Positions 17,466 through 59,100 of a stretch of 64,000 nucleotides of DNA are shown here, piece after piece (the first letter of the stretch is position 1; every line of letters starts with the position of its first letter). Source of the stretch: Paragordius varius. Its lineage: Eukaryota > Animalia > Nematomorpha. The translations under genes and the position numbers were made by a program. Below the pieces are notes generated by a model. It was not told the DNA's origin and made no database searches. It saw only the letters and a program-made list of their open reading frames with translations. The stretch is from positions 3,410,001 through 3,474,000 of the forward strand of contig OZ176052.1 in NCBI GenBank assembly GCA_964247055.1, given 5' to 3'.

Positions 17466-20400
17466 TCATCTGTTTTTAAGTCTCAGAAATAAAGGCAACG
17501 GAGATTTGGAAATATTATCGATATTACTGGGATATACGGGTGATAATTGAGTGATATTGGTTTCATCAAAATAATTAACATTTTCCGTAATGTTTAAGCA
17601 AGGTGTTTCTTTAATAAAACTTTCATCAAATAAAATTTCACTTTGATTAACAATGTTTGTCGTTACGTTATTTAGCATATCGTTGGTTTTGACAGAACAA
17701 TCTCCCAAATCTAAAACAAAGAAAAAGCCATATATCTATGTTTATAAAATTTGTATAAAAAAGTGTTTAAATTCAAAAAAGTATACTTGATAAATTAAGT
17801 TCTGTACTATCTAAAAACAAAGTAGAATAATTTGTATGATTAAGTAGTAATGTATCATCCATACAGGAGCATCCAATTTGATGATTCTGTTGGTTACAAA
17901 CATGCGAATTTTTGACGAATTCTTCCGTAATATACGGCGATTTTTTGTGTTTGGAAACAGTTGATGTATTAAAGATGTTTTTTATGGGAGTTGTAATTTT
18001 ATTTTTTTCAGCTATCCTCAATTTTGCCATAAAATCGGTAATTAGATAATTATTAACAATCGGCTCATTGATTGTTTCTTTGGTTGAAGCGTTCTTTTTA
18101 TTGAGATTCTTGCCAGTTTTATTGGTTGCTGCTTTAGCATCTAAAATTAATGAAGTAATAAAATGATTTGTGAAATTTTTAACACATTATTTAGACCACA
18201 GGGGTGGCCTTAAATAGCTTCGCGGGCCGCATTCACAAAATATATAGGTATTGATAAATATTTTATTACATTTCAAACATAAAACTGTAAAAACTACTGT
18301 TTTTAATTTCTAATTCATTGCCAAAATTGGGTACGATGTATTCAGAAAATTTGCATAAGACAAAAAATTTTACTTACATTTAGTAAAATTTTGTATGTAG
18401 AATTTCTCGCGGGCTGCCAAATATTTTGGAGGGCCGTGTGTTGGCCCCCCTGGTTTAAACCAAATAAATTTATTCTTTATTTATTAGGTTTATTGGTATG
18501 AAAAATTCTTTTATATAAATAGGTTTTTAAAAACACATTTAATATTAAATTTTATTCCACTCTAAAAACAAACTGATTTGAACAAAAATATAAACCAAAT
18601 ATGACCCCAAACCCTAAATATTATAATATCTCATACTTTTTGCCGTTAGATACATTGTAATCTGATCTGGATACATACTAGTTACAATGTAATCACGGAT
18701 AGGAAACTCAAAAAATTGATTTGTGCTTTTGGATTCTTTCAACATGGTTTTTAACCATTTCTTATTGCTGACAATTTTTGACTCATTATTCGCCGTTAAC
18801 ATTACTTTACTATTATATATTATTTTATAATTTTTGTCATCATGAATGAATCGAATGACAAAATATTTGTTTTGAAGTTTGTGTTGTGTTTTAACAATAG
18901 TCTCTGGCTTTAAACCATATAAATGCGCAAGAATATTTGCAAATAAATTTCCTTCATCCTCACCCTTTTCAGATGAAAAATGGTGTAAGGCACCCATGTG
19001 GTAAATTAGGTAAGGAAATAATTTTTCAAATGTATACTCAGGGTCCCAATCAAGATTCTGACGCATAAAATTCTAGCAAGTTCAAGGAATAAATCATTAT
19101 TTTTTTTGAATAAACTGGTTAAAACCAAAGTTATTAACAAGTGTTGCAAATTACATGTAATTTTAAGAAAACAAAACCTAAACCAATGACACATTATTAA
19201 CAAAATATCAATCGAATATTTATAAATTTAATGGTGATATTTTGGGCTATAAAATTAAAAAAATATTTATTTCAGTTCCAGAGAGAGTAAAATCTTATAC
19301 AGAATGTCTTAGTTAGATGTTTGTTTAACATAAAATCTATGAATAAAAAATCATTATTAGTTAGCAAAATCAAACAAATGAGTGGTCTAGTTAGTATCAA
19401 ATTTATTCTATTGTATTCACCATAAAATATAAAAAAACTTAACTTACCAGTACACCCTCAATATCCGGCACAGTATGTTTCAATTCATCTTTCGTCGGTA
19501 TATATTCCTTATTATCTAGGCATTTAAATTCCTTAACGACCTATAAAATAACGCCCAAAAAATAATAGCAATAAATATATTTTCACGGGCATAAATTTGT
19601 TCGGACAGATAATTACATATTTTATGAAAAAGACTAAAAAATATTTTTTAATTGTTTTAAGCCCATCAATACGAAACTCACTTAATTTGAAAGGTATTTG
19701 CGTTTATATCAATTTGATAATCCAAAATATATAAAACAATTATCAAAGGGATGTTTATAAAAGGTATCAGAATCTACTATCCAAAAAAACACTCTAACTC
19801 TATTTATAATAAACTCATTTTTAATAAAAAAAAACATGACCCCAATTATCAACAAAATCATTTTTTTAATAAACATAGAAGTTATTCTATTAAATTTTGA
19901 AAACAAGAAAATATAAATTTTATAAACCTCATCTATTGGGAATGAATTAGATGGTATGGTCAAAACTTTTTTACACAAATTCAATTCCATTTTGTGGTAG
20001 GCTAAAATTGTTTGAGCCAAATGCCAGGTACAATCACAATTTTCTGCAAAATTATATGGGCAAATATGAACATCCTTAATTATAAAATAAAAAAAAATTT
20101 CATCAGATTTTAAAAAACTTGATTTGGTGCCGGAATTACAATGTTTCCCACACAATTCCAATTCAACCAAAAATGTATAAAAAGGATCACGTCTCCATTC
20201 ATAAATTCTATATATATATATATATATATAAATACGAATCATCTTTTATAGATATAAAAATATAGAAGAACGAAAGACATGACATTTAAAAACCAATCTT
20301 TACACAATATATTACAGACATATAATATTCATTCATCTCAATAATTCAATTTCTAATTTCAGTTTCTTAAATGATAAAATCAATCGCAATTAACCAAAAA

Positions 20401-21552
20401 AGTACAAAAAATAATATACTTGTCAAGTAGGGAGAATCCTTTAATTTGAGAATTTTGGTTTTTCTTCAAATTAGAGAGGAAATTGAACACACTTTCTTTA
20501 CCGATACCAGGTATGCCTCGTGGAAAATAATCACATCCAAGTAATAAGGCACAAGCTATTAAATCATCCTGTGTAAGGCCCAGCGATGTTTTAATGTGTT
20601 GCGAATCGTAAAAATCAACTTTGTTTTTCTACTTATATTATCAAAATAAATATATAAAGGGTTGGGTTTCGTTGATCAAGCCAAAAATAACCATACTTAG
20701 TATGTGAAAAATAGATTGATCATTATAAAAAAAGCACACAAGTTGTGATTAATTAAAACTTGATTATTAATTAAATTGTTCAGGTACTAGCATGAAAGAT
20801 AATTATAATAATTTTATAAACTTTATTTTAAAGATAAATTTTATATAGATATATATCTTTGGATAAACATATGTTTAATTTTTCGCTGTTGTTTTCAAAA
20901 GCGGTTACAATTACAACGGATCAGATCAACTCTAATATAAACTTTTAAGTTTTTTTAACTTGGGTAATTACTTTAATATCAATATCTTTGAAAATATGCA
21001 ATCCTCCGTATACAAAAATATCACTATCTGAAGAAATGCAACCGTCCACAATCTATTATATAAAAAATTTAAAACTAATTTTTGATTCAGTAAGGCACAC
21101 AATTTTTCAGCTTCAGTTTTACTTTTATAATATGGTATTCCCATTAATGTGATTAATTCAATGCACTACTGATTATATTCCAATTTCTTACCTTGTTTGA
21201 AACTTTATTCAACCTATGCCGTGTTTTGGTAAAATTTTTGCCACCATCTAAGCGTTTATTAATTGTTTCCATTTTTAACTTCGGAGGTTTTCCATCAATT
21301 ATAAATACTAGAAAAATTTGGTTCTGATATAACTCTACTATTCGAAAAAATAAATTTCTATGCAAATAATTAAATATTTTAAAACCTCAGGTAAAAATTT
21401 GAGGATAATGGGTTTTGAAATTTTAAACTAATATTAACACTTTCACAAACCCAAATGCTAAGATCGACAGCCAAAAATTTGCATCTCAAATTCTCCAAGC
21501 TGAGAGATTGTTTGTATTTTAAAATTGCCTCCCATATATTTTGCACTCCCAT
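17466..21552 (-). CDS. GEN1: GEN1 Holliday-junction resolvase (XPG/Rad2 family), about 706 aa, 10 exons (21552-21386, 21357-21192, 21165-21076, 21052-20972, 20628-20420, 20207-19928, 19540-19448, 19072-18637, 18140-17787, 17710-17466)
   Basis: Spliced translation gives MGVQNIWE..LAVDLSIWVCE..LRNLFFR..FIIDGKPPKLK (XPG-N), TEAEKLCA..VDGCISSDSDIFVYG (XPG-I), LLLGCDYFPRGIPGIGK (H2TH), CDCTWH and LDWDPEYTFEKL. All intron phases are consistent. Confidence 0.93.
18199..18452. mobile_element. hAT MITE in GEN1 intron 8
   Basis: Ends caggggtggcc / ggcccccctg; degenerate flanks atttagac(ca) and gtttaaac resembling Buster/Charlie target sites. Confidence 0.65.
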
Positions 21553-21602
21553 TTTGTATACATGCGCATAAACCGCTGGTTGATGTGTGACTCGCTGTTC
21601 TG
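21553..21602. promoter_or_regulatory. 50-bp head-to-head gap between GEN1 and Dab start codons (putative bidirectional promoter)
   Basis: GEN1 ATG at 21552 (-) and Dab ATG at 21603 (+). In-frame TGA at 21588-21590 and no + strand AG in the gap. CG-enriched, contains the palindrome atgcgcat. Confidence 0.7.
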
Positions 21603-23256
21603 ATGGATAGGACTGAACGCAACAATTCCTTTAAATCTGTTACATCTTCACAAGATTCCCAAATTCTGTCAAATATAAACAATGGCCCATCAAATGTACG
21701 AAAATCTATTAAAAAAGATTTTGGTACGTTTGGAAAGCGTAAAAAAGCACCAAGTTTTATTGCAATCAATTTTATAGATGATTCGAATGATGCAAAGTTT
21801 ATGGCCTTAACTCATGGATTGGAATATAATTGCAAATTTATTGGTTGTATCATAGTTAATGAGCTTAGAGGTAAGGCTGTATGTCAGGAAGCATTACAAA
21901 ACCTTAAAGTAATCTAAAATATTATATTTTAGCTCAAAATTAAAAGTGATAATGCTCATAAACAAAAAATAATATTCAAAATATCACTTAACGGAATCAG
22001 TATTTTTGATGCAAAAAATAAGGTTTTTATTGCCTATTATTAATAGATTCTTTTGCACAAACATCCAGTCAATCGCATATCTTTTGTCAGCAAAGATACC
22101 AAAGATAATCGTTGTTTTGGATACATTGTTTCCTTAGAGGATAAATCAATTAAATACTTTGGATACAAATCTGAAAAACCCGTATTAATTATTTCAATCC
22201 CTTTTTATATCAAGCAATATCCCAATATTTAAACTTAATTTACAATTTTTATTTTAAAATTCATACTTATATGTTTAATTTTATCTTTTTGAAACATGTT
22301 TAAAAATTTAACCTCATTATTTAATGTTTATACTCTGAATCCATATTGATAAATAATCTATCTCCGAACATCGCCTAATATACCATTTGCAGTTCAAATT
22401 CACCCTTAAATTCGAATTCACCCTTGAACAATTTAAATTCACCCTAAAAATAAATTGTCTGTTTTCGGGCTGATATAACTCATTATTAATATGAAATATA
22501 ACTTTATGGCTTATTTTATTATTTTTTTAGTATTACTTAAAATACAAACGAAATTTCAATTAAAAATAGAAAATAAAGTTATATGAAATCCTAAAAAACC
22601 ATAATTTTTTTAGGGTGAATTTAAATTGTTCAGTGTGAATTTGAATTTTAAATGGTATATTAAAGATTAATTTCATATTAAATATAAAAACTCATTTATA
22701 AAAAAAGAATTTTCGATATATCCCCCTTGAGAATTACAATTTTCTTATGCCAGGCCGAAATAGTTGTAACCGCAATCCATGATCTTTTTATGATCATCAA
22801 AGAAATAAAAAGCCGCACGTCCGGTAATGGCGCTTCTGTGTTTAACACATCAAATAATTCAAATTCAATTAACAATAATACTAATAATAGCAATTTGTTG
22901 TTAAATTCAACATTTGATATTCTCAACTCATCATCACGCACTTCAAGTGTTTTGGGAGGTGAAATACAAAGTAATAAATACCCTTTTAGAATAATTTTCA
23001 TTACTGAGATATCATTTTAATTATCTGCATCTAAATCCAGTAAATATCTCTTTTTCCCCTATAATGACTGGCCTTTTTATTAATTAACTTATTTAATTAA
23101 GGCCTTAAACTATTTTTTATTCTCAATATGATGGCAAAAATTAAAAATAATCTTTCATATATATATATTTTTTTGAAATATCTGCTATGGTTTAAAAAAA
23201 TTTTATACATTTTTTATGAAATATTTTTCCCAAATTCGGTTATTATGGATGGAGCG

Positions 23257-23294
<38 letters not shown>

Positions 23295-24020
23295 ACATTT
23301 AACCCTTGTTTTTAACTCTAGAATAAATTGCATGGTTTTAAATCCCTATATTTTATTTATTAAACATGAAATTTCATTTCAAATTACCTATTATACGAAA
23401 AATATAAACCATGCCATAAAATATTTCACATTAATGATGAGTTAACACCAAACATTTAAGGTATTTTAGGATGAATTTGGAGTCTTTTTAAGGGTGAATT
23501 TCAGGTCTAAATTGGTATATAATATATAATTGTTGTGGTTATTAAAAATAATTTTTTACTTAATCTAATAATATTTTTCTGCATAGGCTTTTATAATCAT
23601 TATATATAATTATATGTATTTAGCTCCCGTGTCTACCAAATCAGGGATAGTAGCAACCCAATTAAATACTCTCATACAGAATACTGATTTACTTTCCATA
23701 TCTGATCCGGTTTTCTTTTACTATATATTTAAATTTATTTTATACATGGGTTTTTATGACAAGATGTGCTGAAAATTTAAATTCTATTTTATTTTTGTTT
23801 AATTGATTAGTTTTCGCCAATTAGTAGTACCACTGCTCCATCCGCACAAATAGATCCGTTTGTGCTGAATCCGTCTTTTCTTAATATCGAACCTACAAAA
23901 AATGGTATGTGTTCTTAGAAATTTTTTGAGGAAAATTTTTAATTATACTTTAAAACATGGGTGTCTAGTATGCGGCATTCCGCGAAATTCGGTGTGCTGC
24001 CCACGGAAAATTTTAACAAT

Positions 24021-24074
<54 letters not shown>

Positions 24075-31798: not shown

Positions 31799-33828
31799 TT
31801 ACTTAAAACATTAATAAAAAATACCGTATCTCTCAGGAATTCATTAACTTCATCTTGAGACAACGGTTGAGTGTCTAAATGAGACATATCGGACCAGCCC
31901 ATAGAATGTAGGAATCGTAATTCTTCGGCCCCTTCAGGCATCTCCAATAAATCATCCGCTAAATATTCGGTTGTTTCTGAGTTCGTTGTACTGCTCGCAG
32001 TATTTTCAGAAATAGTTCGTTCATTAACGACCCTTTTCTTACTAAAACTTCTTTCATCATTGTTTGATGATGTCGGCGGGGGCGGTTGATGAAATTGGTT
32101 AGTTTTCGAAATGTCAATATTGACATTATAGTTGTTGTGATGAGTCATAGAGGTAGAGTCATTTTGATACTCATCTCCATTTTGTAAATCATTTATATGA
32201 ATGGGGAAGTTTTGATCCTTGTGATTTCCATTAGTGATATTATTACCATTAACACAAGAGGAGTTAAGAGGGGGATATTTTAGATTGCTATCATTTGTGT
32301 TTATCGTATTTTCATTATGATAGTGTGTTATGTCATTTGAATAATATTTTGAGCTATAATAATCAAAATTAGTTTTATGTAAATTGGAAGTTTTTGAGCT
32401 TTCTGAAGCGGTACATGAAGAATGGCACCAATTTGGTCCTAGTTGAAATTCAGATGTATTCAACGTTTTGGGTTGAAACTTTATGTCATTATAATCATAA
32501 TTATTGTTGGTATTATTTTCCAAAGAATTTATAGCAGTATTTGTTGCAGTATCAAAACCATTTTGCTAAATATACATTTATAAATGTATGTCTAAATATA
32601 TCAAAATGCTGACTTAAACACAAATTTATAATCAAAATAGAACAATGAAAATGGCAAATTATCAATAAATTACGTATCAATGATTTGATTATAATTAAGT
32701 TCGTATAAAACTTATCCCAAAATCTCTAAAAATATAGTCATGGACAGTATTGTAGTAAATATATTAATGTTACTGAAATAATATTTTGGGATATTTTATA
32801 AAAGTCAACTCAAAAACGTATAAGATATGAAAATATCTTATATTTTAAATTAAAATGAATTTTATTGGTTAACTTAACCTTAACGCTAATATATACTTTA
32901 TATGAATAAGAAGATTCGTATGAAGGCGTTTGATTGGTCGTGTTAGGATAATTTTGGTCAGACGATTGTGTAGTATTCCCATTCATATTAGAAACAGAAT
33001 TATAGCGTTGAAAATCAGGATCCTCTCTAAAATTTGAAAAATGAGACCCGTTATGGAATTTAGCATCAAACGAATTATAATTTTTCATCTCAGTGGTAGA
33101 ATTAATATGATTATTGTTGTCAGAACCATGATTTATATTAGATGTACCATTATGATGATTGGAAGAATGGAATGAAACATATTTTTGATTGTTTGAGAAT
33201 TTCAAAGGATTATAATTCATATTATTTGTATAAGGCGAATGACCATTTATTGAATCATTGCCGTTGGTGTATACATTTTCTGGTAGTACATTATTGGAAT
33301 ATACATTAAATGCATTTGAATTACAGGCGTTACGAATATGAGGTCGTGTATTCCCAAAATTATACTACAAATATTATTTAAAAAATATAACTTGATCTTG
33401 ATAGTTCCATCGGGGTCTCGCATAAAAACGTGGGTCTAGATTTGGATTAAATGAGGGATTGGGATATTTAAATGGACCTAATATTTTTTAAAACATTAAT
33501 ATACCTTTCAAAAATTGAGAATTCGGAAAATATGCTCGTGTAAATGGAATGTTTCGTAAATGTTTGTTTTGAAAATTTTCAAATTTAGTAGCACCATTGT
33601 ATTTATAAGCATTATTAAAAGGGGGTTGATATCCATTTAGATTTGGACGATTATTAACCTTAGACAAGGGTATAAAACTAATAATTTTATTTTTTTGATT
33701 AGAATCTTTCTGTGAGTTATCATCGGATTTAGGTGTATTCTAATAATTAATATAACATTTACTTCTTTGGTTGATTTTAGCCATGATGGAAACAAATTTT
33801 GATCAATATTGCCTGACTCGGGCTCCAT
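31799..33828 (-). CDS. Asn-rich protein with vasculin/GPBP1-like C-terminal motif, about 532 aa (exons 33828-33763, 33739-33505, 33477-33392, 33364-32897, 32565-31825, stop 31801-31799; alternative unspliced stop at 31678)
   Basis: Phase-consistent splicing joins the 33637, 32810 and 31678 ORFs. C-terminal EELRFLHSMGWSD..PLSQDEVNEF resembles the GPBP1/vasculin motif ExRLLKxMGW..PLTEDExxEF (recalled). Gene model is solid; family call is moderate. Confidence 0.6.
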
Positions 33829-38956: not shown

Positions 38957-39204
38957 TTAGCGCCTGCCTACAAAACATTCATGTTAGTCATATCACAAGC
39001 ACTAAAAATTTGGAAAATTAATAAAAAGTAGAAATAAGAGAATGTAACTATTGTGAAACGCACTAGATTCACATTCTAGCCATGACAACAATTTAGCATT
39101 GCATTAATTTCACAATAGTTACATTCTTTCTACTTTTTATTAATTTTCCAAATTTTTAGTGCTTGTGATATGACTAACATGAATGTTTTGTAGGCAGGCG
39201 CTAA
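38957..39204. repeat. Near-perfect inverted repeat / young MITE-like hairpin
   Basis: Arms 38957-39058 and 39108-39204 are identical over 97 nt apart from one 5-nt indel (taaga); 49-nt loop. Confidence 0.93.
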
Positions 39205-39593
39205 GAAGCATCCATACAACTTCAATGTCTGATTAACAACATACTAAAATATTAGGCAGAGCTGTTTGGTTCATTTATATTTTAGCCATTTAATAGTCGT
39301 TGGACTCCGAAACATTTTTAAATTCTGCAATTATTGATCTTTCTCATCAGTACGGTATAACGCATACAAAAATTTGAATAAATGACTTATTATATGTAAA
39401 TATATCTAGTATTTTCATACAATATATTAATTTACTAAAGCTGAATAAAAATAATTAAAAAGTGCTTTTAAAAATATAAATATGTGTAAATTAAAGCCTA
39501 TGGGTATTGCACAAATATGTATGGTATGTTATCATAAAAGCAATTATAAAATGCAAGAATAAGTGGTCAATTCATATTAATAAAATAAAGTTA

Positions 39594-42500: not shown

Positions 42501-45500
42501 ATGATGCATCTTAACCAGTTCGATTGTTTGGTCAATATTCTTTTTGGCACGATTAACTGCTTCGACTCGCTGACATCTAAAATATCCACCAGTTGAGGTA
42601 CCGTGCTTTCTCCAAGCCTCAAGGCATACCCAACAAAAATCAAATTTACACTCATAACAACGTATATGATTACATCCTTCAACCTTTTGAATGGGACATC
42701 TACATTTAGGACACGGTTTACAATGAGTAGCCAGCCATAATTTATTGGCCACGCGTTCATATTCCTGTTCAGCTTCTTCGGCAGTCAAAAAATCATTCTC
42801 TGCACTTGACGGATTTTTCGGGTCTTGAATGTTCTTTGGTGCATTTGTTTGGTTTTTTTCGGAAATTTGCGATTCATTGACATCTCCTAGGACAAAACTG
42901 TTTTTTTCATCTTTTTCCTGGTGCTTTCGTCCATGGCGCTTACTAATACCATTTTTAAACCTCCAAAGATTATGCGCGCTGTTAGATCTTAATGTTTTGA
43001 ATCGGGTAGAAATACGATTAAAATTATTGTTGCTAGTTGACATGTGTGATAACACCAACGTTTCTGGCAACAGAGATTTGCTTCTCTCGTATAATCTCTT
43101 CCTAGAGCGCTTAACTTGATTAGTTTTATCGTCTGCGTGAGCAATTATTCCATTGTTAGTAGACATTGCTACAATGTCCCGAGCAATATTTGCAAACGAT
43201 TTTCGTTTATTTACAGTTTTGGCCACTTTACAATTTAATTTATGCCCACGATCACCGTTTTCCTCGGGCAAATTTACGGTGGAGGAAGTAGATATTTGGG
43301 ACTTTTTGTTTAAATCTTTAACATGATCGAGGTTTATTTTGGTGGTATTAGGCATATTCGACTTTTCATTGGATGAACATGCTCGCATTATTTTTCGATT
43401 CCACTCTCTCAAAGCAGTACAAGAACATGGAGGATGTGCTTCACTGCCACACAACCAACAAAATTCGTGAAAATTTGTAAGATTAGCAATATATTCATCA
43501 GTCGTATATGGTAGATTTGAATATTCATTACATATACGATTTCCACCACAATCAACATCAAAAATTTGAATTGAATATACATGCATTCCAGGATCAATTT
43601 TAAAGCAAGCTCCAATTTGATTAAAATAGAGGTGACTAGAAGTTGTTATGTCATCGTCATCAGGATGTTTGAGAATTAATGCGTTATTTGATATGTTCGC
43701 TGTGTCTAGGATGTCCAGATCTGTTGACATTTTCCAACAATGTATTCTATCGGCGCTGGATGATAGTGAGAAATCTTTTGGAATTATATATGATTCATGT
43801 ATTTTTACCGATTGAGGGCAATCTGCAACTGGGCAAAATCGTATATACGGGTTACCAGTAACAAACGTTTGTAAATCGTATTGCAAATATTTTTTGGTCA
43901 AATCACGAGAAACAATTTTTTCTATAAAAGCTATTGGCACTAAATTATTACATTCATATGCCGGACATAGTATCATGTTAACTTTACCCTCTTGAATTTG
44001 CAGCGTAAGATAAGTTTCCCAACATGTCCGACAAAACAAATGCCAACAATCCATTTTTGGTTTAACAATTTTGGCTTTGGTATCGGGCCTCACATCTTTA
44101 TTAAATGCAATAGATGTAGTAGGATATGATGCTGCTCCGTCTTGTATATTTTGAGCTTGTTCACCAAGTTCGGTTAAGATTTCATCACATATACCACATT
44201 TTGGAGATGGTCCCTGTTTCATTATTGTAGGCTGGAATGAAGTGGTACAAGAGTCAAACATACAATTATTTGTTAATGTGGAATTCTTGTCATAATAATT
44301 GGTAGGGGATGTGGTTGATGATGGTGGAGATTGTACACCCGACATTTGGCAACAGGCACGACTATCGCATGTCCATGATTTGAGAAGTTTGCTTTTGGAC
44401 CAATCATGAGCCCGTAACAAGCCCTCTGCTGTAAATAACGGAACATTTAGCATATCAGCCGTACTTACTATAAGGGTATCCTTTACTTCTTGTAGATCTG
44501 TGCGAGTAAGCGCCTTATAACATTCATCAAACGTTAGACGCGACAATTCTTTTTCAATCAAATCGTCCTGCTCCTCGGCCATATAAACCAAATGGAATTC
44601 AATGTATTTAACTAGGCGTTCATTTCCACTTTCCCAAGCAAGGTCTAAACACGAAGCATATACACGTGATATGTTATTACGTCTGTTATAGTATTGTTGC
44701 TCATAAATACCTCCCCCGCCCATAAAACTATTTCGTCCACCATTATTATACAAATCTTGTGAAGTGTATGAAACACGCTCACGCAATGTCCTAACTAATG
44801 CACGTGTTAAGGGCTGTGAGCCCCAACGTTCAAGGAGGTATTTGAACAAAGCAAAGTTTCCAGCTCTAGCAACGTAATGTAATGCTGTCCACCCCTTGGT
44901 ATCTTTGAGGCACAAGAAGTTGGCAGGAGCCCATGGATTATATGTTTTGTAGTAGCTTGTTAGCAGTGGCGCATAAAAATCGTATCCTGGTTTCAAATTG
45001 CTATTATCTGGATCAACCTGTTGAAAATCATCACCGTTACCCTTACAAACAACCGTGTCACTATTTTTTAAAAGAGGTTCTTTTTCTTTAGCTAATTTGT
45101 CTGTATAATCTGATGAAGTACATGCCTCGTTGTTTGTTAATAAAAAGTTCTCATCCGTATCCATATTATCATCAATGGAGGTTTGAGATTTAGGGATCGA
45201 AACACCATTAGAATTTAATGTTTCATCCAATCGCGATACATAGGATTTTGTATGAAGTGAACATAATTCCTCTAATTTATTATACAATATTTGGCAACAT
45301 AATATTCGTTTTTGAGTTTCGGTGATTCGATTTGTTGTGTCCTGCGTGAATTCAACATCAACGCTTGGATATTCGTAATTGCTATCAAAATTGGAGGGTT
45401 CACAGACTGCATGTAGAACTGACTGTGATTTATCATTTTTTATGGATATATCACATCTGGAATCATTAACAAACATTTGAACAAAATATGGCATGCCATG

Positions 45501-45665
45501 CTTTAAAGCTATATGCAAAGGAGTATCATGGCAATACGAATCGATCAAAGGTAAACTTGGATCAAGTAATTTTTGGATGTCAGTGGAATTTTTAAAAAGA
45601 TTTATGGCCAGTTTTTCATCTCCGGATAGTAAATATTTTTGAAATTTACTAGATTGATTTCCCAT
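39594..45665 (-). CDS. ANKIB1: Ankyrin repeat and IBR domain-containing RBR E3 ubiquitin ligase, 2023 aa, single ORF
   Basis: MGNQSSKF N-terminus, ankyrin repeats (DTPLHIALKHG, GWTALHYVARAG), TADMLNVPLFTAEGLLRAHDWS, RING1, IBR, RING2 CKPCPKCRCPIQKVEGCNHIRC with catalytic Cys, Ariadne-like region and UIM-like DMIRALEMSRIEY. Confidence 0.95.
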   Translation of the reverse strand: MGNQSSKFQKYLLSGDEKLAINLFKNSTDIQKLLDPSLPLIDSYCHDTPLHIALKHGMPYFVQMFVNDSRCDISIKNDKSQSVLHAVCEPSNFDSNYEYPSVDVEFTQDTTNRITETQKRILCCQILYNKLEELCSLHTKSYVSRLDETLNSNGVSIPKSQTSIDDNMDTDENFLLTNNEACTSSDYTDKLAKEKEPLLKNSDTVVCKGNGDDFQQVDPDNSNLKPGYDFYAPLLTSYYKTYNPWAPANFLCLKDTKGWTALHYVARAGNFALFKYLLERWGSQPLTRALVRTLRERVSYTSQDLYNNGGRNSFMGGGGIYEQQYYNRRNNISRVYASCLDLAWESGNERLVKYIEFHLVYMAEEQDDLIEKELSRLTFDECYKALTRTDLQEVKDTLIVSTADMLNVPLFTAEGLLRAHDWSKSKLLKSWTCDSRACCQMSGVQSPPSSTTSPTNYYDKNSTLTNNCMFDSCTTSFQPTIMKQGPSPKCGICDEILTELGEQAQNIQDGAASYPTTSIAFNKDVRPDTKAKIVKPKMDCWHLFCRTCWETYLTLQIQEGKVNMILCPAYECNNLVPIAFIEKIVSRDLTKKYLQYDLQTFVTGNPYIRFCPVADCPQSVKIHESYIIPKDFSLSSSADRIHCWKMSTDLDILDTANISNNALILKHPDDDDITTSSHLYFNQIGACFKIDPGMHVYSIQIFDVDCGGNRICNEYSNLPYTTDEYIANLTNFHEFCWLCGSEAHPPCSCTALREWNRKIMRACSSNEKSNMPNTTKINLDHVKDLNKKSQISTSSTVNLPEENGDRGHKLNCKVAKTVNKRKSFANIARDIVAMSTNNGIIAHADDKTNQVKRSRKRLYERSKSLLPETLVLSHMSTSNNNFNRISTRFKTLRSNSAHNLWRFKNGISKRHGRKHQEKDEKNSFVLGDVNESQISEKNQTNAPKNIQDPKNPSSAENDFLTAEEAEQEYERVANKLWLATHCKPCPKCRCPIQKVEGCNHIRCYECKFDFCWVCLEAWRKHGTSTGGYFRCQRVEAVNRAKKNIDQTIELVKMHHARTSKLHTFLMHYNKYREHDTKLTFEQGRLLQSLLKRMARIQDFFDEYGSVLFTDFFTTSALPLLGLKKESIISKYHCKESLNLSFLLVGHRQLIKARRVCKYSAVYAYFMMSEIEEQISVKTLTNNGKSTVPNNWENNFGNSIKTSTPVNIFNKTIFDFLLNELEECTENLSKLLNCAYFSSSRMKILQMTHLVYRKRREFINSLDWDFNNFYRTINERKRNNAIGKTFVDEAMKDAYNGIAMIPQLVGKSDNNDKVDNVINIGLYQPQTPPMLKKFRRKHFPNLLDMETLRDDDNFRIRRNITDFLIYSRSIAQKDGGALHRNCLSTSLNKNRRRSLSAFSTFPRMHGGSLKQSLKYWLAKGVGGSNGFGSFTSFKSMSGANSEQRQKNTQRLLDPIQKDPISLLNILNFLDNSDINTYSIKELLDMACDMFAGNLTGENDTKSFGRMPPNNVGPNKVKNRLFYNNYLNSIANNERHMNALYHRSHLNYINPSSLWVKDETGRHANLIALYDWPSPPEEEEEDELLESPKPEKTQQPVNDTHVGINASSIDTKTSQKCKRKSCAKQRVYNPRTGVKQEFCSFKCFSIHQQSTQHFFDAKNNSYNSSQFCSFEDDMEKGLEEIDHHTDETSEVLKDPNALENINKGNERRFLIQDTYHLDMIRALEMSRIEYQKEIKRREMTSNHNPQSCTSIIEKNNDTRPKSNLEICHADCNVNNISERSLPASMNVSVLNRPQSLEIKLNNIVAPMTDLRNNFCQFDVSIKFHSHQNSPNRAATNEVSNSEHNQIPAPITEPYAFVKEKTNYGPNLYLPSSPDSDENDAEEVEKNNPVTVKEINSLILNKHTKKIRKQMSLIGENQPSTLKSLDVNETSKISKINTTSKSLDYSDQNVRPPLTFNVAPLLPLQPPIEISEDGQVGIENTYVVQNDPTLPSCSTTDQNNDNEVDMIENLTTCLNSIMIKNDLSSV

Positions 45666-45764
45666 AGGAAGAAACTTATAATATTATAAACCACATCGGT
45701 ATTCAGAAAATCGATTTTTTGAAAAAATTTAAAAGCATGTGATAAAAAAAGATATTATGCTAAA
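45666..45764. promoter_or_regulatory. 99-bp head-to-head gap between ANKIB1 and SelT start codons
   Basis: ATG at 45665 (-) and ATG at 45765 (+). Confidence 0.65.
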
Positions 45765-46701
45765 ATGAGCTCTAACATATGTACCTTGCTCCTTTTGCTT
45801 GTATTATCTCTATATCTGGATATTTATGATGAAAACAGTGATCCTATTGATATAAAGGAAGTGCAATATCCCAAAAATACTCTGAAAATTGAATATTGGT
45901 AATTACATTATTAATTTTAGCTCTTCTTGAGGATACAAAAAAACTTTTCAACAAATTGGAAATGTCTTGTTGCAAAAATATCCTGAATTTAATATCATCG
46001 GTGAAATATACCCTCCCAATCCTCTCAAAAAATATTTGGCGCAAATACTAAATATAGCAAAATTATCACTTATAGCTATGATCGTTCTCAATATAAATCC
46101 TTTTAATATGCTTAATATATCCACTCCATCCATTTATAACTGCATGTTAGAATCCAAAGTATCATATTTATCAAAAATACATCTTTATATTATATAAAAT
46201 AGTCTAATTGTTTTAACTTTATAATTATTTTTGGGAATAGGGTTACTTTTGTTTGATGCTATTTTTCATTTCAAATGCTATTGAGTCACAACTAATTTCA
46301 ACTGGTGCTTTCGAAGTTTCAATAGATGGTAATTTAATATTTTTTTATTGTCATAAAACTTGATGCGGTGAAATGTTTTTTAATTTATATTTTACACGAT
46401 AGTTTTTATTACTTTCAATCAGCAAACAACTTTGAGTTAATATGTTTTACGCGGTCACGAGCCCGCGTACCGGTTAGACCTAATTTTATTTATAATTCCA
46501 GATTTATGAGAATTTTTTTTTACATATAACAAATGTTTTTATATCTTTTTAAAACTTAATATATATCTTCTATGATCCTATTTTATCAGCCTGTTTTTTT
46601 CAGGTCAAATACTTTGGTCAAAACTTGAAACTGGCTACATTCCAGAAATACCACATCTTCTCCACATATTGGATTCTTACATTGGTTCAAGAAAATTCTA
46701 G
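45765..46701 (+). CDS. SELENOT: Selenoprotein T (Rdx family), 185 aa, exons 45765-45898, 45921-46158, 46241-46328, 46604-46701; Sec UGA at 45928-45930
   Basis: Signal-peptide-like N-terminus; LKIEYC-S-S-U-GYKKTF (CxxU); IIGEIYPP; STGAFEVSIDG; LWSKLETGYIP. Phases are consistent and a SECIS lies downstream. Confidence 0.93.
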
Positions 46702-46720
46702 TTTTCAAATCATGTAAATA

Positions 46721-46791
46721 TTTCCCCTTACATTTATGAAGATTAGTGCCTCAAAATTGTCATGGCATTAATTGGAACATTTTAGGGGAAA
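46721..46791 (+). promoter_or_regulatory. SECIS element in the SelT 3' UTR
   Basis: Helix I tttcccct/aggggaaa; core AUGAA (46736-46740) opposite GGAA (46774-46777); helix II gattagtgcc/ggcattaatt; apical loop with unpaired AAA 12 nt after the core. Confidence 0.9.
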
Positions 46792-48069
46792 GAAGTGAAT
46801 ATATCTCAAATATATAATTTTCAAAATTTATTAATTGTTTATAATTATTGTCACAACTATAAAAATGTTGCAATTGTCATTTTTATTTCTATATATTGTA
46901 TAAATAATACTAGTTATTTTCGCCTCGTTGCTTCCAGTTTGATTTTTGAATTATATAATTATACTATAACATCAGAATAATCAGTAAGATATTATAATTT
47001 CAATATGTAAAAATTAAAAAGAAAAGTCTCAATTACCAAAAAGTTTCATAACAAAGTTTATTGGATAATTATAATAATCAAACGTTATCTCTACATCTCT
47101 TTATTTAATGGTCACATAATATACATGTTTAAATAAAAATGAGGTATATCACCCGATAGCCTTTCTTTTCTTACTATCATTAAAATCGCGGGTAAATTTT
47201 GACAAAATTCAAAATGGATCTCAGCTATCCCTTTTTTATATAGAATGAAACACGAGGCTATCGTTGGATATAAAAGGGAGATCGAATACTAACTAAGTGG
47301 TGACAAATGTTAAAAAATGATAATTTGATGTGGAAACAATAATCACACATTGGAATTCGGTATGAAGGATTTGGTTATGTTGAATTGTAAAATTTTCCAA
47401 GTAGTTAACGTTTGAATTACTTTTCATTTCTTCATTTAGGGACAAAAATATACTTTTTTAATTTTCTATGGATAGTGATATCGCCAGCTTCCATTAACCG
47501 AAAAAAACTTGCGGGGCAGGTTGCACATAAAAAAAATAACTCCAAAAAACTGATTTTAGGTAGTGAGTTGTTATATATACAAAATAACTAAAAATTTGCA
47601 TTTAAAAAGTTACTAAACATAGAAAGTTTGTGTTTCAGTAAGCTTCGAGCGTCTATAATGCAAAAATAATATTTTTTAACATGAGTCTATCATATAATAG
47701 TTTATATAGGTTTCAAAATGTGAAAAAATAAAAAGTTAACAATTTTGTCAAAGGTTTTTTACACAGCAGCTACATAACCTTTTGTATGTTTGGTGGTTGC
47801 AAAACCAAAATAACCATCTAAATCCCGATTAAAAATATTTTTTGTGTGCAGTATGCCATGCATTATCTTAAAATCCGCTTCCTCATTTTGCACAAATTTT
47901 TTTTGAAAAATTGTGCCAAATATTTTCTATCTCTATTCTAATCAATATAAGTTTACCGCAAAACCTCGGCACATGTTTGTATATAACCACTAGTCCATTT
48001 TGTGAGGGGTGCAATTTTTTTTCGGAGCCCACATGATATCCATATTGCTTTTTAGTTATATTGATGATT

Positions 48070-50078
48070 TTAACACTTCGACTCAGAATGGGGCATCTAA
48101 ATACCCCAGACTAAATTTGATTTAGGATTTTTAGAAAACTACTAAATAAAACGGTCCCTATTTAATTTTATGCTTCTATCCTAATAAAAATTATATGCCA
48201 AAATATCTAGAAAGTTTGTTTTGAGAAAAGTACCATGTCAAACTACTTTGACGCTATTTTTACAAAATTTTTGAAAAATATCGTCTTCATTTAATTTTAA
48301 GAGTAAATTTAAGGCTAATTTTTTATTAAACATTGATACAAATAGAAAAAGCGGTTTATTTTGTATTATTTTTTAATTTAACCATTGCACACATGTCACG
48401 TTGACCAAATTTTTATTTTTCGGTTTTAGTTTAAATAAGGAATATCAAGTATTTTTGAATAAAGTTATTTATATATTTTGGTTTATTAAAGTGCAAAATT
48501 TTGCCATGGTTTCGATTCCTTCTATATTTTTTAAGAATTTTTTAAACAGCCCTGGGGTATTTAATTACCCCAATTTTATTCGGAGGACTGAAATAAATGT
48601 GTTGTATCCAAGTGTTAATGGAGGCATTCACAAAAATTTATTTATCTAACATAAATCCGCTAATTATGCGATTTTTGGTGAAGCGATAAGCATTGTATAA
48701 TTTTTATGAAATCTTAAACTAATAATAAATGCACCATAATGATACAATAATTTATGTATATATATTAAAATTTTTTTATCCACCTCCGATTTTGTTCACT
48801 GTGAACAGTATAATCCTTTCACTCTTCACTCATAAAATACTTGAATATTTTTTGGTTAAAATCTCATGTGCATTTGATGTTTACAATTGTGGGGTTAATA
48901 TAAAAATATCGAAAAATTTGCACTTTATGTTATATAAAATTATAGTGAAATCTAAATTCATATCCAAAAATTTGACTAAAAAACAAGTTTTTATAAATTT
49001 TAGATGTCGAATATATCAAATATTTGGATCTGTCTAAAATGGTTGTAATAAACGCAAATGGTATTGCGCGATATTTATTTAAAATTTATGCTAAACTCAT
49101 CAATAAATGTTTTTCAGAAAAATTCAATATTTTTCTTAAAAATGTAAAATTTTGGTGAAGCGAGTTTTATGGTATTATGAAGCATGTAGAACAGTATATA
49201 TTATAAGATTTTATTAAATCCTTTTCTATATGATGCTGAATATATCTATCTTCTCAGATTTTACAGATTTATGTTAAATTTAAGTTATACATTTCCTAAT
49301 CAAACAAACATTTTCCCAGTCAGTTTTCCCAACCAATGAAACAATTTCTCAGTCTATTGAAACATTTTCCCCGTTAAAAACGGTTTTTTAGGATAAATAT
49401 CAAAACAAGGCATAAAAATAACTTTTAACCATTAAACATATTAAAAGAATATTATTTTTTAGATATCACAAATTTTGAATGACAATTTTGTAATTATATG
49501 CCAATTACACAATCATTAACACTTAGATCAACAAATTCATATTATTCCTTTGATTCATATCGAGGTAGTTAAATACCCCAGGCCTGTTAAAAATTAAATT
49601 CTTTAAAAAATATGGAATTAAAACCATGGCAAAATTTTGCACTTATATAACATTAAACCGAAATATATAAAAAAAATTATTCAAAAATACTTGATATTGC
49701 TTATTTTAAGCTAAAACCGAAAGGAAAAAATTTAGTCAACGTGACATTTCTGCAATGGTAAAATTGAAAAATAATACAAAATAAACCGCTTTTTCTATTT
49801 CTTAATGTTAGATGTAATTTATATAAAATTTAGCTTTAATTTTAAACTTAAAATTAAATGCAGCCGATATTTTGCAAAATTTTTTTAAAAATGTCGAAGT
49901 AGTTTGACATGGAACTTTTTTTTAAAACAAAATTTTATTTAGATATTTTGGCCTATTTATATAATATTTATTACGATTGAAGCATTAATAATTAGGACCG
50001 TTTCCTTCAGTAGTTTTTTAAGAATACCTAATCAAATTTAGTCTTGGGTATTTAGATCCTCAATAATCGAAAAGTTAA
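48070..50078. mobile_element. Two inverted, diverged copies of an about 500-bp element 1 kb apart (or one foldback element)
   Basis: 48070-48571 aligns to the reverse complement of 49561-50078 throughout. Each arm is bounded by taaataccccag / ctggggtattta-like inverted ends. Confidence 0.8.
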
Positions 50079-50553
50079 TGACTTAATCTTTATACCATTT
50101 GCATTTCAAGATATTAAATACTTCGAATTGCTTAAACATTTCAAATTAAACATTTGAAAGTTGCGTACCATATTTTATAAAACGCTATCTTTTAGTCAAA
50201 TGTCTTTTTCTATTTTCGAATTAAACATTCATTTAAAAAATATTTTAATTGAAATTTTTTCACAACAGTATATTTATAAACAATTGAATGTGGTTTTATA
50301 ATCTGAGACCTAAAAAAAACAGAAAACCTCTTGTAAAAAATATTTTTTTATCACTTATATTTTCTAAAAAAATAATATTTTAAGAAATATTAAATAAGCA
50401 CATCCTATATTAAAAAATTGTAATCTAATTATTAGCCAAGTATCAAATAATTATGTAACGTCTTATTTACCATTTATGTGGGTATCTTTTATATTTCAAT
50501 TACAATTTTATTCTCATTTGACTCTCTTAGGCGTTAGCCACAAAATTTAAAAC

Positions 50554-53500
50554 ATGAGCCGAGAAAAGAAATCACTTAATTTAGATTTTTTATATAAAAC
50601 AATGGGTATTTATTTTTTTAATATATAGAAACCCGGGATCCTAATAAACGTAAAATTAAACCGATTGCTAACGCCGATACGATTATTATGTCGGAAGATA
50701 GTTCGGATGATAGTGATTATAATCCCAATCCATCAAATACATCTAATTCGGAAAATGAAGATAATTCTAGCATAGAAGGAGAATCTTTAAGCATTGATTC
50801 CAAAGTTGAAGCAAAAAGTATTACAAATTCGGAATTACCAGAAAAATCAAACATTAATATAATAATGGTATAGTTTAATAGTTATATTTAGAATGATAAT
50901 CTTATTTGCATAATATGTCTCAACGATAACAAGTTAAATACGAATAATGTTTAGATTAGAGAGTGAAACTTTGGTTGAATGTGATATTTGTGGCGTAGTG
51001 GTTCATGAAGGTTTTGGTTAATTTAATTATAAAATTTATTTTATAAAAAATTTAATTATAATATATTTTAAAAACATGTTTCAGAATGCTATGGTATTTT
51101 TGTTGGAACACCAAACGCATATAGCACAAAAACAAGAATCGGTTTTTTTATAGTTATATATATATTACATGTATTTATTTTTTCATTAATTGTTTATATA
51201 TCACATTAATATATGGGTTATTAAGGAATATGCTAAATTTTACCTTAGTTTTATTTAAATTATAGTCTTCTCTTATAATTTAACTTATCTTCTAAATATT
51301 TATATCTTTCCTATTTCATATTTTTGTAACTTCACTAATTATAAATAAAAAACTAACGGTTGACTTTTGACTGCATTAATAATTTTATATAAGGATGCTT
51401 ATATTTTAATTTCTTCAATGTAATAAATATTTTTGATTTTAACATTTTTATAACACAAGGGAGTAATAATACTTCATGACCTTTTGGTGTAATTTTATAT
51501 CCCAAAGCCATTTAAAATTATTATATTCAACAAATAATTTTTAGCATTAGCCCAAATCAAAAAATATGCTTTCTTTAGCCTATTAGGCGCGCATTGTAAA
51601 AAATTTTAAAATATCGGCTGATAGTTTGGATCGTGGATTGGAGCTACCTGGATTTGGGACCATAGAAATTAAGAAAAGTGTAAAATAAGTTATTTTTTAT
51701 TTAATGCAGAAAAAGGTTTGGTAATTAGATGTTATCAACTTTAACAGTAATTTTTTACTACTTTAGCTCTGGGTATAAAACTATCCCCAAAATGTCATCG
51801 CGGGAAAAAATGAAAAGGTATTTAAGTGTGATAACAATACAACAAAATCTTCGTGTAGATACTCTTGTTTTAGACTTCAAATTTATTTTGTCATTATCAT
51901 TATCTAATATGATTGTTTCAAGGTTAATGAATCAAGCATTTAACAGTCCTTATATTTAATATAACATACACTTTTCATTTTTTAGATCCTATGGATATTC
52001 AATCACACAGTCGGAGAAGGGGATGCAAAAAAGATGTAGTATACCGGTCGAGCAATAAGAATAAAAAACTTAAAACATCTTTTTCTTACAGCGATATCCC
52101 ACTTGATTCACCCCTAATAAATCCATCCGTTGATTTAGTTGACATTGATCAACACATTAAGAATTTGAATGGTGTTGGTACCAACACCATGGTTCCAGGA
52201 AAAGGAACCACATCTCAAACTTCAATCAACCTGAACGAATTGCAAGGTAATGCCCGTTTATTATTATCAAACAACAATAACAATACCACATTAATAAATG
52301 ATAAAGTTAAACAGCAACCCAATGATGATGATGATAAAAATACCATTTTTCTTATGGATGTTGTTGAAGATAGTCAACAAACTGTTGAAAGAAATAGGAA
52401 AAATCCAGAATCTATTGATAACCCAAACAACAACGCAAATGATTGTGATTCTGTCATAGAAAACCTTAACCACCTTTATTGCAACAGTAGTTTTGATAGT
52501 AGTTATGGAAGTACTCGGAGTCATAATACACAACATAGCATTGCAAGCGGTGGTGATAATTTATATAATGTGAATGAGGATTTGTTTTTAAATGAAAAAA
52601 ACATGATTAATACAGCGAATAATGATGATGGTGATGATCGAGAAAGCGTAAGCAGTGTATTTTCAACTGAACCCTGGTTTTGTGAACCGTGTAAATCCGG
52701 CGTATATCTCCCCACGTGTCAGTTATGTCCTGCCATTCCTGGTATTGGTGCCTTCAAGGAAACGGATGTCCGAACGTATAAAAATATGATTTATAACTTT
52801 TAAACTAAAAAAAGTTTTAAATTAACGCCTAATGCAGTGGTGTTTAAACCGTGGCCTATGGGCCACGTGCGACCTTGAATTATTTGTTAAATTTTTTTGG
52901 TGTATGGTACTTATTTGAATATAATTATTTGCAAATGTATCAAACAGCTATGATTTTTTTCCGCACGCATTATATGTTTCAGGGCCCTTGAGATAATAAA
53001 AATATAATTGGCCCTTTAAATTTTTTGATGGGTACCACTGCTCTTAAATTTCGAATACAAAAAAAATATATCTTGCAACATTTTAAAGGTAATATAAATA
53101 TCGGATGATTAAATTAAACTCTACGTTATAACGCTAACCATATAAATGAGTTAGTTACACTATACCATTTACACTTAGAATTTATCCTTAAACGATTCGA
53201 ATTTCACCCTCGAACAATTCAAATTCACCCTAAAATAAATTATGTTAATATGAATTATACCTATATTTTAATATATATTTTAAAAACATAAAGTTTCGTT
53301 TAAAATTAAAATATAATACTGAAATATAATAAATTAAGCTCTATTATATTTTATATTAAAAATGAGTTATGTTATCCCGAAAACACATATTTTATTTTTA
53401 GGGTAAATTTAAATCGTTCATGTTCAAGGGTTAATTATAATTGTAAATGGTATACCACTATTTCTTCAAATTATTTTGATTTATATGGTTATCGTTTAAT

Positions 53501-56109: not shown

Positions 56110-56162
<53 letters not shown>

Positions 56163-59100
56163 AATAGTTTTGCACTTAAAAAATGATATATCTTATATCT
56201 TACGGAATTTTAAATAAAAATTTATAACAGCATATATTATATCTCTAACAGAAGGCGAGAAAACGGTTTTTAAAGATGATTTGGTTATAGAGCAAAAAAA
56301 TATTATTAATATAGTTTATTTTTTCCATAGTTTGGTAATATTATGTTATAAGTTAAGTTGAAATGTTATCATTAATTTTTACACATACTGAAAAATAAAG
56401 AACTTATGAAATATTTCCTCTAACACCCAATAGTTTGTTGGCTTGATTAGACGTGTATGATTCGTATTTTTATAAGCTTAGAACCATTATTAATGTGTAT
56501 TTAATAGACATTTGAAAAATTGATCATTTCATGCAAAAAATATACCTATTCAAACATAAATAGACGCATTTTACGTCGACTTTGTGAAAAACGGTCCACA
56601 TATAACGCATACGAAGTTGATTATGGCCGGAGTTTACTTGATTACTGGCTCCCAGATCAAAGTATGGAAAAGATTTATGGAAGGCATCTCACAACTGACC
56701 CCTATTACGTTCGATGTTTAATCGAACGAAAAGCACCCCTTTTTGGTATTCATCGGATTGAAGTATATACTATATATATGACTACAATGTTTAACAAAAT
56801 GAACAAAAAATGAAACGAATATTTTTGATAGCGAGTTTTAATTTGTTCTTTACGCTTTTTAATGCCTTAAAACGAATATTTTAATTAATTCAAATTGTAT
56901 ACATTATATTGTACCCAATTTAAATTATATTTTTTGTTTGACATAACGTAAAGTATTCATAAAACACATTTTGTAAATGAACCTATTCAAATAATTTAAA
57001 TGCTCTACTACATGCATTTTCTTTTGACCATGTGCATTACATAGCTATATATATCTAAATATATATATATATATATATAGTCCTTGCTGGGATTTGGAAC
57101 CTTCATAAATTATACTAACCCTGTAATAACTAATACAACCCAACATAAAGACTCCAATGATATCCATGAAAGTTCTATGGCATCTGATACATCGCTGCTA
57201 ACTTTAACCCCTCTGAATACGCCAGAGTTTACGCCAAAATTTGTGGATCTGTTTATGGGTTGTTTTTTGTCTTTGGTTTTTTTGTAAATGTCTATTTTTT
57301 TCTGATTTTAAACTATGTTTTTATATATAATATATATTTAGAGCGTGAAAATGCCCTTAAAAAGCTTACCTCTAATACCGTTACAATAAAATCGGATATA
57401 AATTCGCTGAAATTTAAACATGGTGAATTGGACAAAAATGTTGCCAAAGTAATTTTGTTTCATATTTATATTTTTTTAGTACAAATTTCATAATGTACAT
57501 TTCATTTTAATAAAATGTATCATAGGATATCATTGGACAACATAAGAATATTCGTTATCAATTAATTGTTATCTATTACATAATTTTTATTATTAATCAT
57601 TTTCAAATGTATATTAGATGAGGAACCTGGTTGAAAACAGCACAATCGAACAAAATCGTCATGTAAACTACACATTTTGTTATATATTTTTCAATTAAAT
57701 AACGCATTTTTACAAAGAATTAATATATCTTTTCAATCCATTCATGGTTTTTGTTATATAGGCGAGTCATTTTGAGGACATCAAAAAATATATGGCTATC
57801 CTACGCCTTTTATCCAGTAAAACAGAAAAAGATAAGATTTTTACGGCACAATCTTCGTTGGATAAACGGTTAGACCTTTCCAAAATGGGTCCTAAAAGTC
57901 AACGACTTAAACGAGCCCTCTTAAATGAGAAAAATAAAGCCACGATCTCCACAACTGCTTCTACACAAGAACGACAAAGGGTGGCTATTCAAGAATATAT
58001 AAAGGATTCCATGGTATATATTTATATATGCATGTGTTGATTCGTTGTTTTATAAATGTAGGGTATTAATTTTTGTTTTTAAAAAAATGGTATTGACTGA
58101 AGTTTATTGTATTTATTGGTCATTGTATATCGAGTTCCGACTTCTCTTATAAAATTAATGTGAAATATTTTTTTTTCAATAACTATCGTAAATATTATTC
58201 TGTATCATAAAGGCTTCTATACTATATTTTTTTCCATATTGTCGTCTGTTTTTTAAACAAAAAATTGGCTTTATTTGAATTATTTCTTTGAATACCCCTT
58301 TTAGTCAAAGTCTAAAACAGGGGTGTCCAACACGCGACCCTTTAAAATATTTCAGCCGCCGCTAGAAATTTCTAAAAAATTTAAGTAAGCTCATTTAAAC
58401 AAATTTTTTAAGTTTTTCCGAATTTTGGCAAGAACTAGCAATAAATATTATTAGTTATTGCCCATATATTTAGCGGATGCGGCCCTCTAAGCCTTTGTAT
58501 TGGACACTACTGGTCTAAATGGTCATTAATATTTTTCCTTTGATGAAAGAAAGTATTATAATTGTGGTTCAACTTTTTTCTTTAATAATTTTGCTAATAA
58601 TCAGACTCAAGTATGCCCATTGATAAACATATTTTTAAATATATATATTTATTCTTTGATAGGCCGGATTTTCATGAATTTTTACGATCAAAAAAACTGT
58701 ATGATTTTGTATTTATATTAACTTAGAACCTTTTGGATTCAAAAGTATGCAAAACTACCGGCAAACGATTTGACGATAATGCCTTAGATATTACATTATG
58801 CGGAGAAAATACTTCATCTATTTGTGTTAAACAATCGCCATCATTTATACATTTACTGACACAACAAACTGCTAAAACATTAAACGATAATTCATTAACA
58901 CAGCAAAATAATGTTAATAATAATCACACTTATTATGCCAAAAATGATACCAGTATTATAACCATAAATGGTAAAATTTTGAATCCAATTAGCTTGGTGA
59001 CAGAAAAAAATCACACACAAACATCAACACAATTAACGCAAGATAAAGATAAATATTTTACTAGGGGTGTGGTGGCTAAAACCGAAATTCCACACAATGA

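Follow-up and report, generated by a model that had tools for sequence, protein, structure and literature searches.

Here we analysed a 64,000-nucleotide (nt) stretch of the genome of the hairworm Paragordius varius (Nematomorpha; contig OZ176052.1 of assembly GCA_964247055.1, positions 3,410,001 to 3,474,000; hereafter the window, with positions counted from its first nucleotide) and found five genes in which intron size is sharply polarized. In GEN1, a Dab-like gene, a vasculin-like gene, SelT and PHF14, 12 tiny introns of 22–28 nt have their donors between +52 and +477 from the ATG, and the 21 later introns that we re-modelled (17 tabulated and 4 further PHF14 introns of at least 117 nt) are 74–1,568 nt in length. 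The size distribution is bimodal, with no intron between 29 and 73 nt, and in five of five genes the k tiny introns occupy ranks 1 to k of the n introns. Within the window, the polarity is confirmed and its statistical support is strong. Judged from their ends, the introns are apparently ordinary U2-type GT–AG spliceosomal introns, divided into a near-minimal class (22–28 nt) and an inflated class.

Intron size depends on distance from the ATG

Donor positions are given throughout as the genomic distance from the ATG. The main intron table holds 29 introns, 12 tiny and 17 later; the 4 further PHF14 introns bring the set to 33. The probability of the observed ordering, calculated as the product of 1/C(n,k) over the genes, is 3.5 × 10⁻⁶, or about 4 × 10⁻⁷ when nine PHF14 introns are used. 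Length is strongly correlated with distance (Spearman rho 0.83, p = 3 × 10⁻⁸; Mann–Whitney p = 8 × 10⁻⁶). All introns with donors within about 480 nt of the ATG are 22–82 nt long, and 12 of these 14 are 22–28 nt; the two intermediate introns, of 74 and 82 nt, start at +457 and +394, respectively. Beyond about +560, every tabulated intron is at least 212 nt, with one exception far downstream, the 76-nt last intron of GEN1 at +3766.

The change in size class takes place between +477 and +564. Introns of at least 212 nt set in at +581, +579, +564 and +588 in four genes (GEN1, Dab-like, SelT and PHF14, respectively) and at +932 in the vasculin-like gene, in which a single exon spans the boundary. 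Introns of rank 3 are tiny when they start at +379, +437 or +477 (22, 27 and 23 nt) and large when they start at +564 or +579 (275 and 572 nt), and distance from the ATG is therefore a better predictor of size than rank. The initial annotation had placed 13 tiny introns within about 500 base pairs (bp) of the ATG and counted about 30 later introns of at least 74 nt. Twelve of the tiny introns stand and the thirteenth, in the Dab-like gene, is a frame-neutral candidate; the 21 later introns that were re-modelled agree with the bound of 74 nt.

We also looked for tiny introns that the models might have passed over. An unbiased scan based on flanking open frames was too noisy at flanks of 25–30 codons in DNA with 27% G+C, and was replaced by a test for in-frame look-alikes inside long exons. 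In 11.8 kilobases (kb) of long exons, this test found four look-alikes, two of them within 400 nt of an ATG; there is no sign in these exons of overlooked downstream tiny introns. None of the other gene starts in the window breaks the rule: an ANKIB1-like gene and a gene starting at 7725 are intron-free for at least their first 1.4 kb.

Gene models and splice junctions

The base composition of the window is 23–39% G+C, and animal genes are present. We rebuilt the five gene models exon by exon from the DNA, and homology searches (Pfam, the Dab1 PTB structure and human GEN1) were likewise made exon by exon. All intron lengths previously given for GEN1, the vasculin-like gene, SelT and the first nine PHF14 introns were recovered as in-phase GT–AG introns. 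GT...AG ends are present in all 29 tabulated introns (12 tiny, 17 larger), and the 12 tiny ones all terminate in TAG. Most tiny introns have a TTAAT- or ATAAT-like motif 7–14 nt 5′ of the AG, which is also the chance expectation at 80–90% A+T. Each tiny intron is forced by the reading frame or by in-frame stops, and 8 or 9 are additionally backed by collinear XPG, PTB or PHD matches or by the Cys-x-x-Sec (selenocysteine) motif of SelT. Removing the tiny introns restores an open frame and collinearity with homologues across XPG_N and XPG_I of GEN1, the PTB domain of the Dab-like gene, the CxxU motif of SelT and the PHD finger of PHF14; the vasculin-like models have frame support only. Position +3 of the intron is a T (GTT...) in 10 of the 29 modelled introns, tiny and large alike (17711–51985), an unusual base at this place in animals that may point to relaxed rules of U1/U6 pairing.

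GEN1 is on the minus strand with its ATG at 21552, and its nine introns (28, 26, 23, 343, 212, 387, 375, 496 and 76 nt) are all in-phase GT–AG introns. We enumerated all frame-keeping GT–AG pairs for each pair of neighbouring exons, and each of the nine lengths corresponds to the junction option that retains most coding sequence. Exon 1 aligns to residues 1–42 of human GEN1, and the exon-wise Pfam matches are collinear (XPG_N 1–38 and 61–95; XPG_I 1–21, 24–46 and 58–89). Intron 1 (21358–21385; 28 nt, +167, GT..TAG, phase 2) bridges the two XPG_N matches, intron 2 (21166–21191; 26 nt, +361, GT..TAG, phase 0) lies between the XPG_N and XPG_I exons, and intron 3 (21053–21075; 23 nt, +477), the sole in-phase GT–AG option at its position, bridges XPG_I 1–21 and 24–46. 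The first large intron is intron 4 (20629–20971; 343 nt, +581, in-phase GT..TAG), and the exon that follows it carries XPG_I 58–89.

The Dab-like gene, which encodes a PTB adaptor, runs head-to-head with GEN1 on the plus strand (ATG 21603), the two ATGs being 50 nt apart (21552–21603). Introns of 24, 24, 572, 1568, 939, 1184, 967 and 479 nt were reproduced in phase, with borders in the low-complexity 3′ exons that are ambiguous by tens of bases. Exon 1 matches the Dab1 PTB structure at 16–47 and exon 2 at 54–78, and exon 3 matches the PID profile at 73–103. Intron 1 (21909–21932; 24 nt, +306), if retained, introduces an in-frame TAA between the two PTB matches. Intron 2 (22023–22046; 24 nt, +420), which precedes the PID exon, is the sole in-phase option and also brings an in-frame stop when retained. 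Intron 3 (22182–22753; 572 nt, +579) is the first large one. The initial annotation had listed three 24-nt introns in this gene, and here the rebuilt models diverge from it: the remaining lengths were all recovered, and the third 24-nt intron has the standing of a candidate within exon 1 (21754–21777; GTTTTA...TATAG, 79% A+T) that is in-frame and stop-free, such that the frame fits either reading. A second candidate for this extra intron (21724–21747, plus strand) is likewise in-frame and stop-free; it has an AAG end and more G+C, and resembles an intron less closely.

SelT (plus strand, ATG 45765) has introns of 22, 82 and 275 nt. Removal of intron 1 (45899–45920; 22 nt, +134) restores the redox motif Cys-Ser-Ser-Sec(TGA)-Gly-Tyr, which the intron splits. 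Intron 2 (46159–46240; 82 nt, +394) is of intermediate size, with in-phase GT..TAG ends and flanks that read as the conserved SelT core, and intron 3 (46329–46603; 275 nt, +564; GT..CAG, phase 1) precedes a last exon that weakly matches Rdx 51–73. That match is the exception in a Pfam search of single vasculin-like, SelT and PHF14 exons that otherwise returned nothing significant (the PHF14 PHD exons, at fewer than 20 residues, are too short singly). An Rfam scan of the window gave no match at the gathering level; below it, a stem-loop at 46727–46786 on the plus strand, 26 nt past the SelT stop, scores 26.3 bits against the selenocysteine insertion sequence family SECIS_1 (E = 0.011; gathering score 35). 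A SECIS-like element 3′ of SelT fits the reading of the in-frame TGA as selenocysteine. A second haplotype or strain in an independent DNA run (X1) has two base differences within the 22-nt intron (45903 and 45906) that leave its length and GT unchanged; the indels listed for the SelT region in the same run are in intron 3, in the 3′ untranslated region (UTR) and just upstream of the ATG. SelT is head-to-head with the ANKIB1-like gene, an RBR/ankyrin gene on the minus strand (39594–45665) that consists of a single open reading frame (ORF) of 2023 codons with no introns; their ATGs are 99 nt apart (45665–45765).

PHF14 (plus strand, ATG 50554) begins with introns of 23, 24, 22, 74, 844, about 827 (740–1556 possible), 405, 490 and 117 nt, and the first four of these interrupt the first PHD finger between its Cys pairs. 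Intron 1 (50606–50628; 23 nt, +52, GT..TAG, phase 1) is required for a conserved basic N-terminal stretch to follow an ATG. Retention of intron 2 (50868–50891; 24 nt, +314) gives an in-frame TAG, and the next exon starts the first PHD finger with a CxxC. With intron 3 (50933–50954; 22 nt, +379) removed, the first two CxxC pairs of the finger stand at normal spacing. Intron 4 (51011–51084; 74 nt, +457), of intermediate size, splits the HxxC of the finger and contains an internal duplication of a motif of about 13 nt resembling AATTTAATTATAA, as would result from local duplication in an originally shorter intron. Intron 5 (51142–51985; 844 nt, +588), with junctions read from sequence, is the first large intron. 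An ATG at 57792 was considered as the start of another gene, with a large first intron, and ruled out: upstream of it the open frame runs to an acceptor at about 57761, which marks an internal exon.

In the vasculin-like gene (minus strand, ATG 33828), the introns, of 23, 27, 27 and 331 nt, were modelled on frame continuity, and no exon matches a Pfam family. Intron 1 (33740–33762; 23 nt, +66, GT..TAG) links a first exon of 22 codons to an exon of 78; intron 2 (33478–33504; 27 nt, +324) bridges stop-free stretches of 78 and 33 codons, and its retention leads to a stop within 5 codons; intron 3 (33365–33391; 27 nt, +437) bridges stop-free stretches of 32 and 184 codons; and intron 4 (32566–32896; 331 nt, +932, in-phase GT..TAG) connects a 156-codon exon to the last exon. 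A doubtful terminal candidate on the same strand (31802–31824; 23 nt, ending in AAG) was not counted: splicing would put a TAA right after the junction, and the unspliced frame is open.

Mobile DNA and compact promoter flanks

Several of the large introns contain repeated DNA. About half of Dab-like intron 3 is taken up by a foldback element, or one resembling a miniature inverted-repeat transposable element (MITE), at about 22376–22662, with nested inverted repeats whose arms measure 34 nt (85%) and 75 nt (71%); intra-window repeats cover 49% of this intron. Two copies of a MITE-like element (about 260 nt, CAGGGG... termini) lie in opposite orientations, one in GEN1 intron 8 (18195–18460) and one in a late PHF14 intron (58312–58525), and are 76% identical. 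In PHF14 intron 5, word depth in run X1 rises 10- to 50-fold at 51300–51699, indicating repeated DNA.

The compact zone also reaches upstream of the ATG, as seen in the two head-to-head spacers (50 and 99 nt) and in about 450 nt 5′ of PHF14 that is free of repeats. The ATG spacings imply that each pair shares a bidirectional promoter and that the 5′ UTRs are very short or overlap. Around the start of PHF14, depth in run X1 is single-copy from about 50100 to 51300, and the high-copy repeat upstream stops about 450 nt before the ATG. Further upstream, about 48100–48700 and 49500–50100 are the inverted arms of an extremely abundant repeat, with a depth of about 10⁶ compared with 200–300 in the single-copy flanks; many contigs of the same run join these arms on opposite strands.

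Elsewhere in the window, positions 1–2800 are a long tandem array with units that are open on both strands (MKKGETLEETDEVD... on the plus strand; a FHPSSYPLHPFLLK-like frame on the minus strand) and a strong skew of G over C. Within a hAT transposon, a GT..TAG segment of 30–33 nt (13684–13716, plus strand; 85% A+T) would join two transposase ORFs, and the gene of this element may thus carry a tiny intron of its own.

Comparison with Gordionus

The 2023-residue ANKIB1-like protein has its best match in Gordionus sp. (Nematomorpha), at 839 bits compared with 362 for the next match, with 37% identity over one-third of the query. On this one protein, the window has nematomorph affinity, and Gordionus is the closest sequenced relative that we found. 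The Gordionus gene has 28 introns of 150–7,593 nt spread over about 40 kb (L005 10001–50499), the first of 7.6 kb at +188; none versus 28 introns means wholesale loss in the window species or gain in Gordionus. Like the window, the Gordionus genome is AT-rich (26.9% G+C), and its Aha1 gene has a short first intron (about 48 nt) and then introns of roughly 1 kb; its ANKIB1-like gene, with many introns and a long first one, differs from the intron-free gene of the window. A third Gordionus gene that was read is a single exon. None of the three genes has introns of 22–28 nt, and SelT was not found at the Gordionus locus that was fetched via the ANKIB1-like protein. The extreme tiny-intron form is not obviously shared with Gordionus. 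Intron polarity is mentioned neither in two nematomorph genome preprints nor in what a literature search returned.

Possible causes of the polarity

On a modest balance of probability we favour an insertion-free promoter island that keeps the 5′ introns minimal, with downstream introns inflated by mobile DNA and duplication. Each promoter would sit in an island of about 1 kb in which insertions and duplications are not tolerated or are rapidly deleted; introns in the island would remain at the smallest length accepted by the spliceosome of this lineage, and introns beyond it would have been enlarged by MITEs, foldback elements and local duplication. The initial annotation had gone further, proposing an ancestrally ultra-compact genome re-expanded by transposable elements (TEs) outside the promoter zone. 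The re-expansion is consistent with the foldback, MITE-like and high-copy DNA in some large introns and with the spared flanks; the Gordionus first introns (48 nt in one gene and 7.6 kb in another) lend no support to ancestral compactness.

Several observations weigh against the promoter island. It accounts for the absence of large 5′ introns, but not for the physical-minimum size of the introns that are there. No recognisable repeat within the window was found in GEN1 introns 4–7, vasculin-like intron 4 or SelT intron 3, and inflation by mobile DNA is therefore shown for some of the large introns only. The 7.6-kb first intron of the Gordionus ANKIB1-like gene starts well inside the zone that is compact here, and the island rule is therefore not general in the phylum. 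The sample is five genes of one window, with distances taken from the ATG rather than from the transcription start site (TSS), a search of sequencing runs listed none recorded as RNA that contains the locus, and three putative RNA runs that carry the same species label gave no contig over 45700–51699. Owing to these last two results, we infer the excision of the tiny segments from the DNA.

That same absence of RNA evidence is the opening for a reading in which the introns are gene-model artefacts: the short segments would be retained, as assembly frameshifts or real insertions, and the polarity would come from the easier modelling of conserved 5′ domains. The vasculin-like gene, for which there is no homology support, and the one or two claimed tiny introns that are in-frame, such that the frame fits either reading, would be compatible with it. 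We nevertheless consider it highly improbable. All 12 segments have GT..TAG ends and lengths of 22–28 nt, their removal restores domain collinearity to within 2–3 residues as well as the SelT redox motif, and the long downstream exons leave no space for hidden frame-shifting tiny introns. Moreover, the independent DNA run spans all of 45700–51699 and, among the indels listed, none is inside a tiny intron. If the introns are real, the tiny ones could be recent gains at the 5′ end, from intronized AT-rich coding DNA or a short inserted element, with the large introns being old. The first 460 nt of coding sequence have about twice the intron density of the rest, and the lineage evidently remodels introns, as the ANKIB1-like genes illustrate (0 here and 28 in Gordionus); but the 12 tiny introns have no common sequence beyond splice signals and AT-richness and are located within ancient conserved domains, which makes recent gain very unlikely.

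The main alternative, also raised in the initial annotation, places the cause in the splicing machinery rather than in where insertions are tolerated. A distinct minimal-intron mode would operate in the promoter-proximal 0.5 kb or so, with a sharp boundary set from the transcript 5′ end: the cap-binding complex, early-elongation RNA polymerase II or promoter chromatin would bring about strict intron definition that tolerates or favours minimal introns, and another mode would take over downstream. The abruptness of the switch with distance (tiny donors up to +477; large donors starting at +564, +579, +581 and +588 in four genes) is what such a regime would produce, as are the very narrow tiny class (22–28 nt) and the introns of 74–82 nt exactly at the transition, from +394 to +457. 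Against it, tiny and large introns have similar splice motifs (a GTA or GTT start and a TAG end), GEN1 tolerates an intron of 76 nt at its 3′ end, and two genes are intron-free in the zone. We regard this alternative as rather unlikely, and retain the promoter island as the favoured account.

Relation to known systems

Across eukaryotes, first and 5′ introns are reportedly the longest. The window agrees with this general rule in that length depends on position, but the sign is reversed, as the initial annotation had recognized: 5′ introns are the shortest in all five genes. To our knowledge, introns of 22–28 nt are near the lower limit for any spliceosome and among the shortest in animals, and have been published for very few animal groups. 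Their presence next to kilobase introns in the same genes means that one spliceosome handles both extremes. If true, a minimal-intron splicing mode would amount to a rule, in an animal, by which splice sites are paired according to position. In practice, gene finders with a default minimum intron length would get the 5′ ends of most genes wrong in genomes of this kind.

Uniformly tiny introns are known from ciliates and from the nucleomorphs of chlorarachniophytes. These genomes, together with those of dicyemids, resemble the window in having GT–AG introns of about 20–30 nt with a very narrow length range. In Dicyema japonicum, the mean intron is 38 bp throughout genes (PMC6736024). Nearly all introns of such genomes are tiny, whereas more than half of the introns modelled here (17–21 of 29–33) are 74–1,568 nt and tiny introns are present only at gene starts; the window is thus not of the almost-all-minimal type of dicyemids and ciliates.

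In the blood fluke Schistosoma mansoni, intron sizes are reportedly distributed in an unusual way, the 5′ introns being small, and we know of no explanation of this polarity since 2009. The fluke genome and the window have in common bimodal intron sizes, a small 5′ class and large, repeat-bearing 3′ introns, in an AT-rich and TE-rich parasite genome. In sgtp2 and sgtp3 of S. mansoni, first introns are 31–41 bp and 3′ introns are large (PMC4653847). The small class is 22–28 nt in the window compared with a reported 26–45 nt or so for the fluke as a whole, and the switch in the window is placed at about +480 to +560 from the ATG. A second, unrelated parasitic lineage with a sharper boundary, about 0.5 kb from the ATG, provides a comparative handle on whether such polarity reflects a constraint on insertions or splicing that is linked to the cap or to chromatin. 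We conclude that the window holds a second and more extreme case of the fluke-type polarity of small 5′ and large 3′ introns, a kind that is already known, here in an ecdysozoan hairworm rather than a flatworm.

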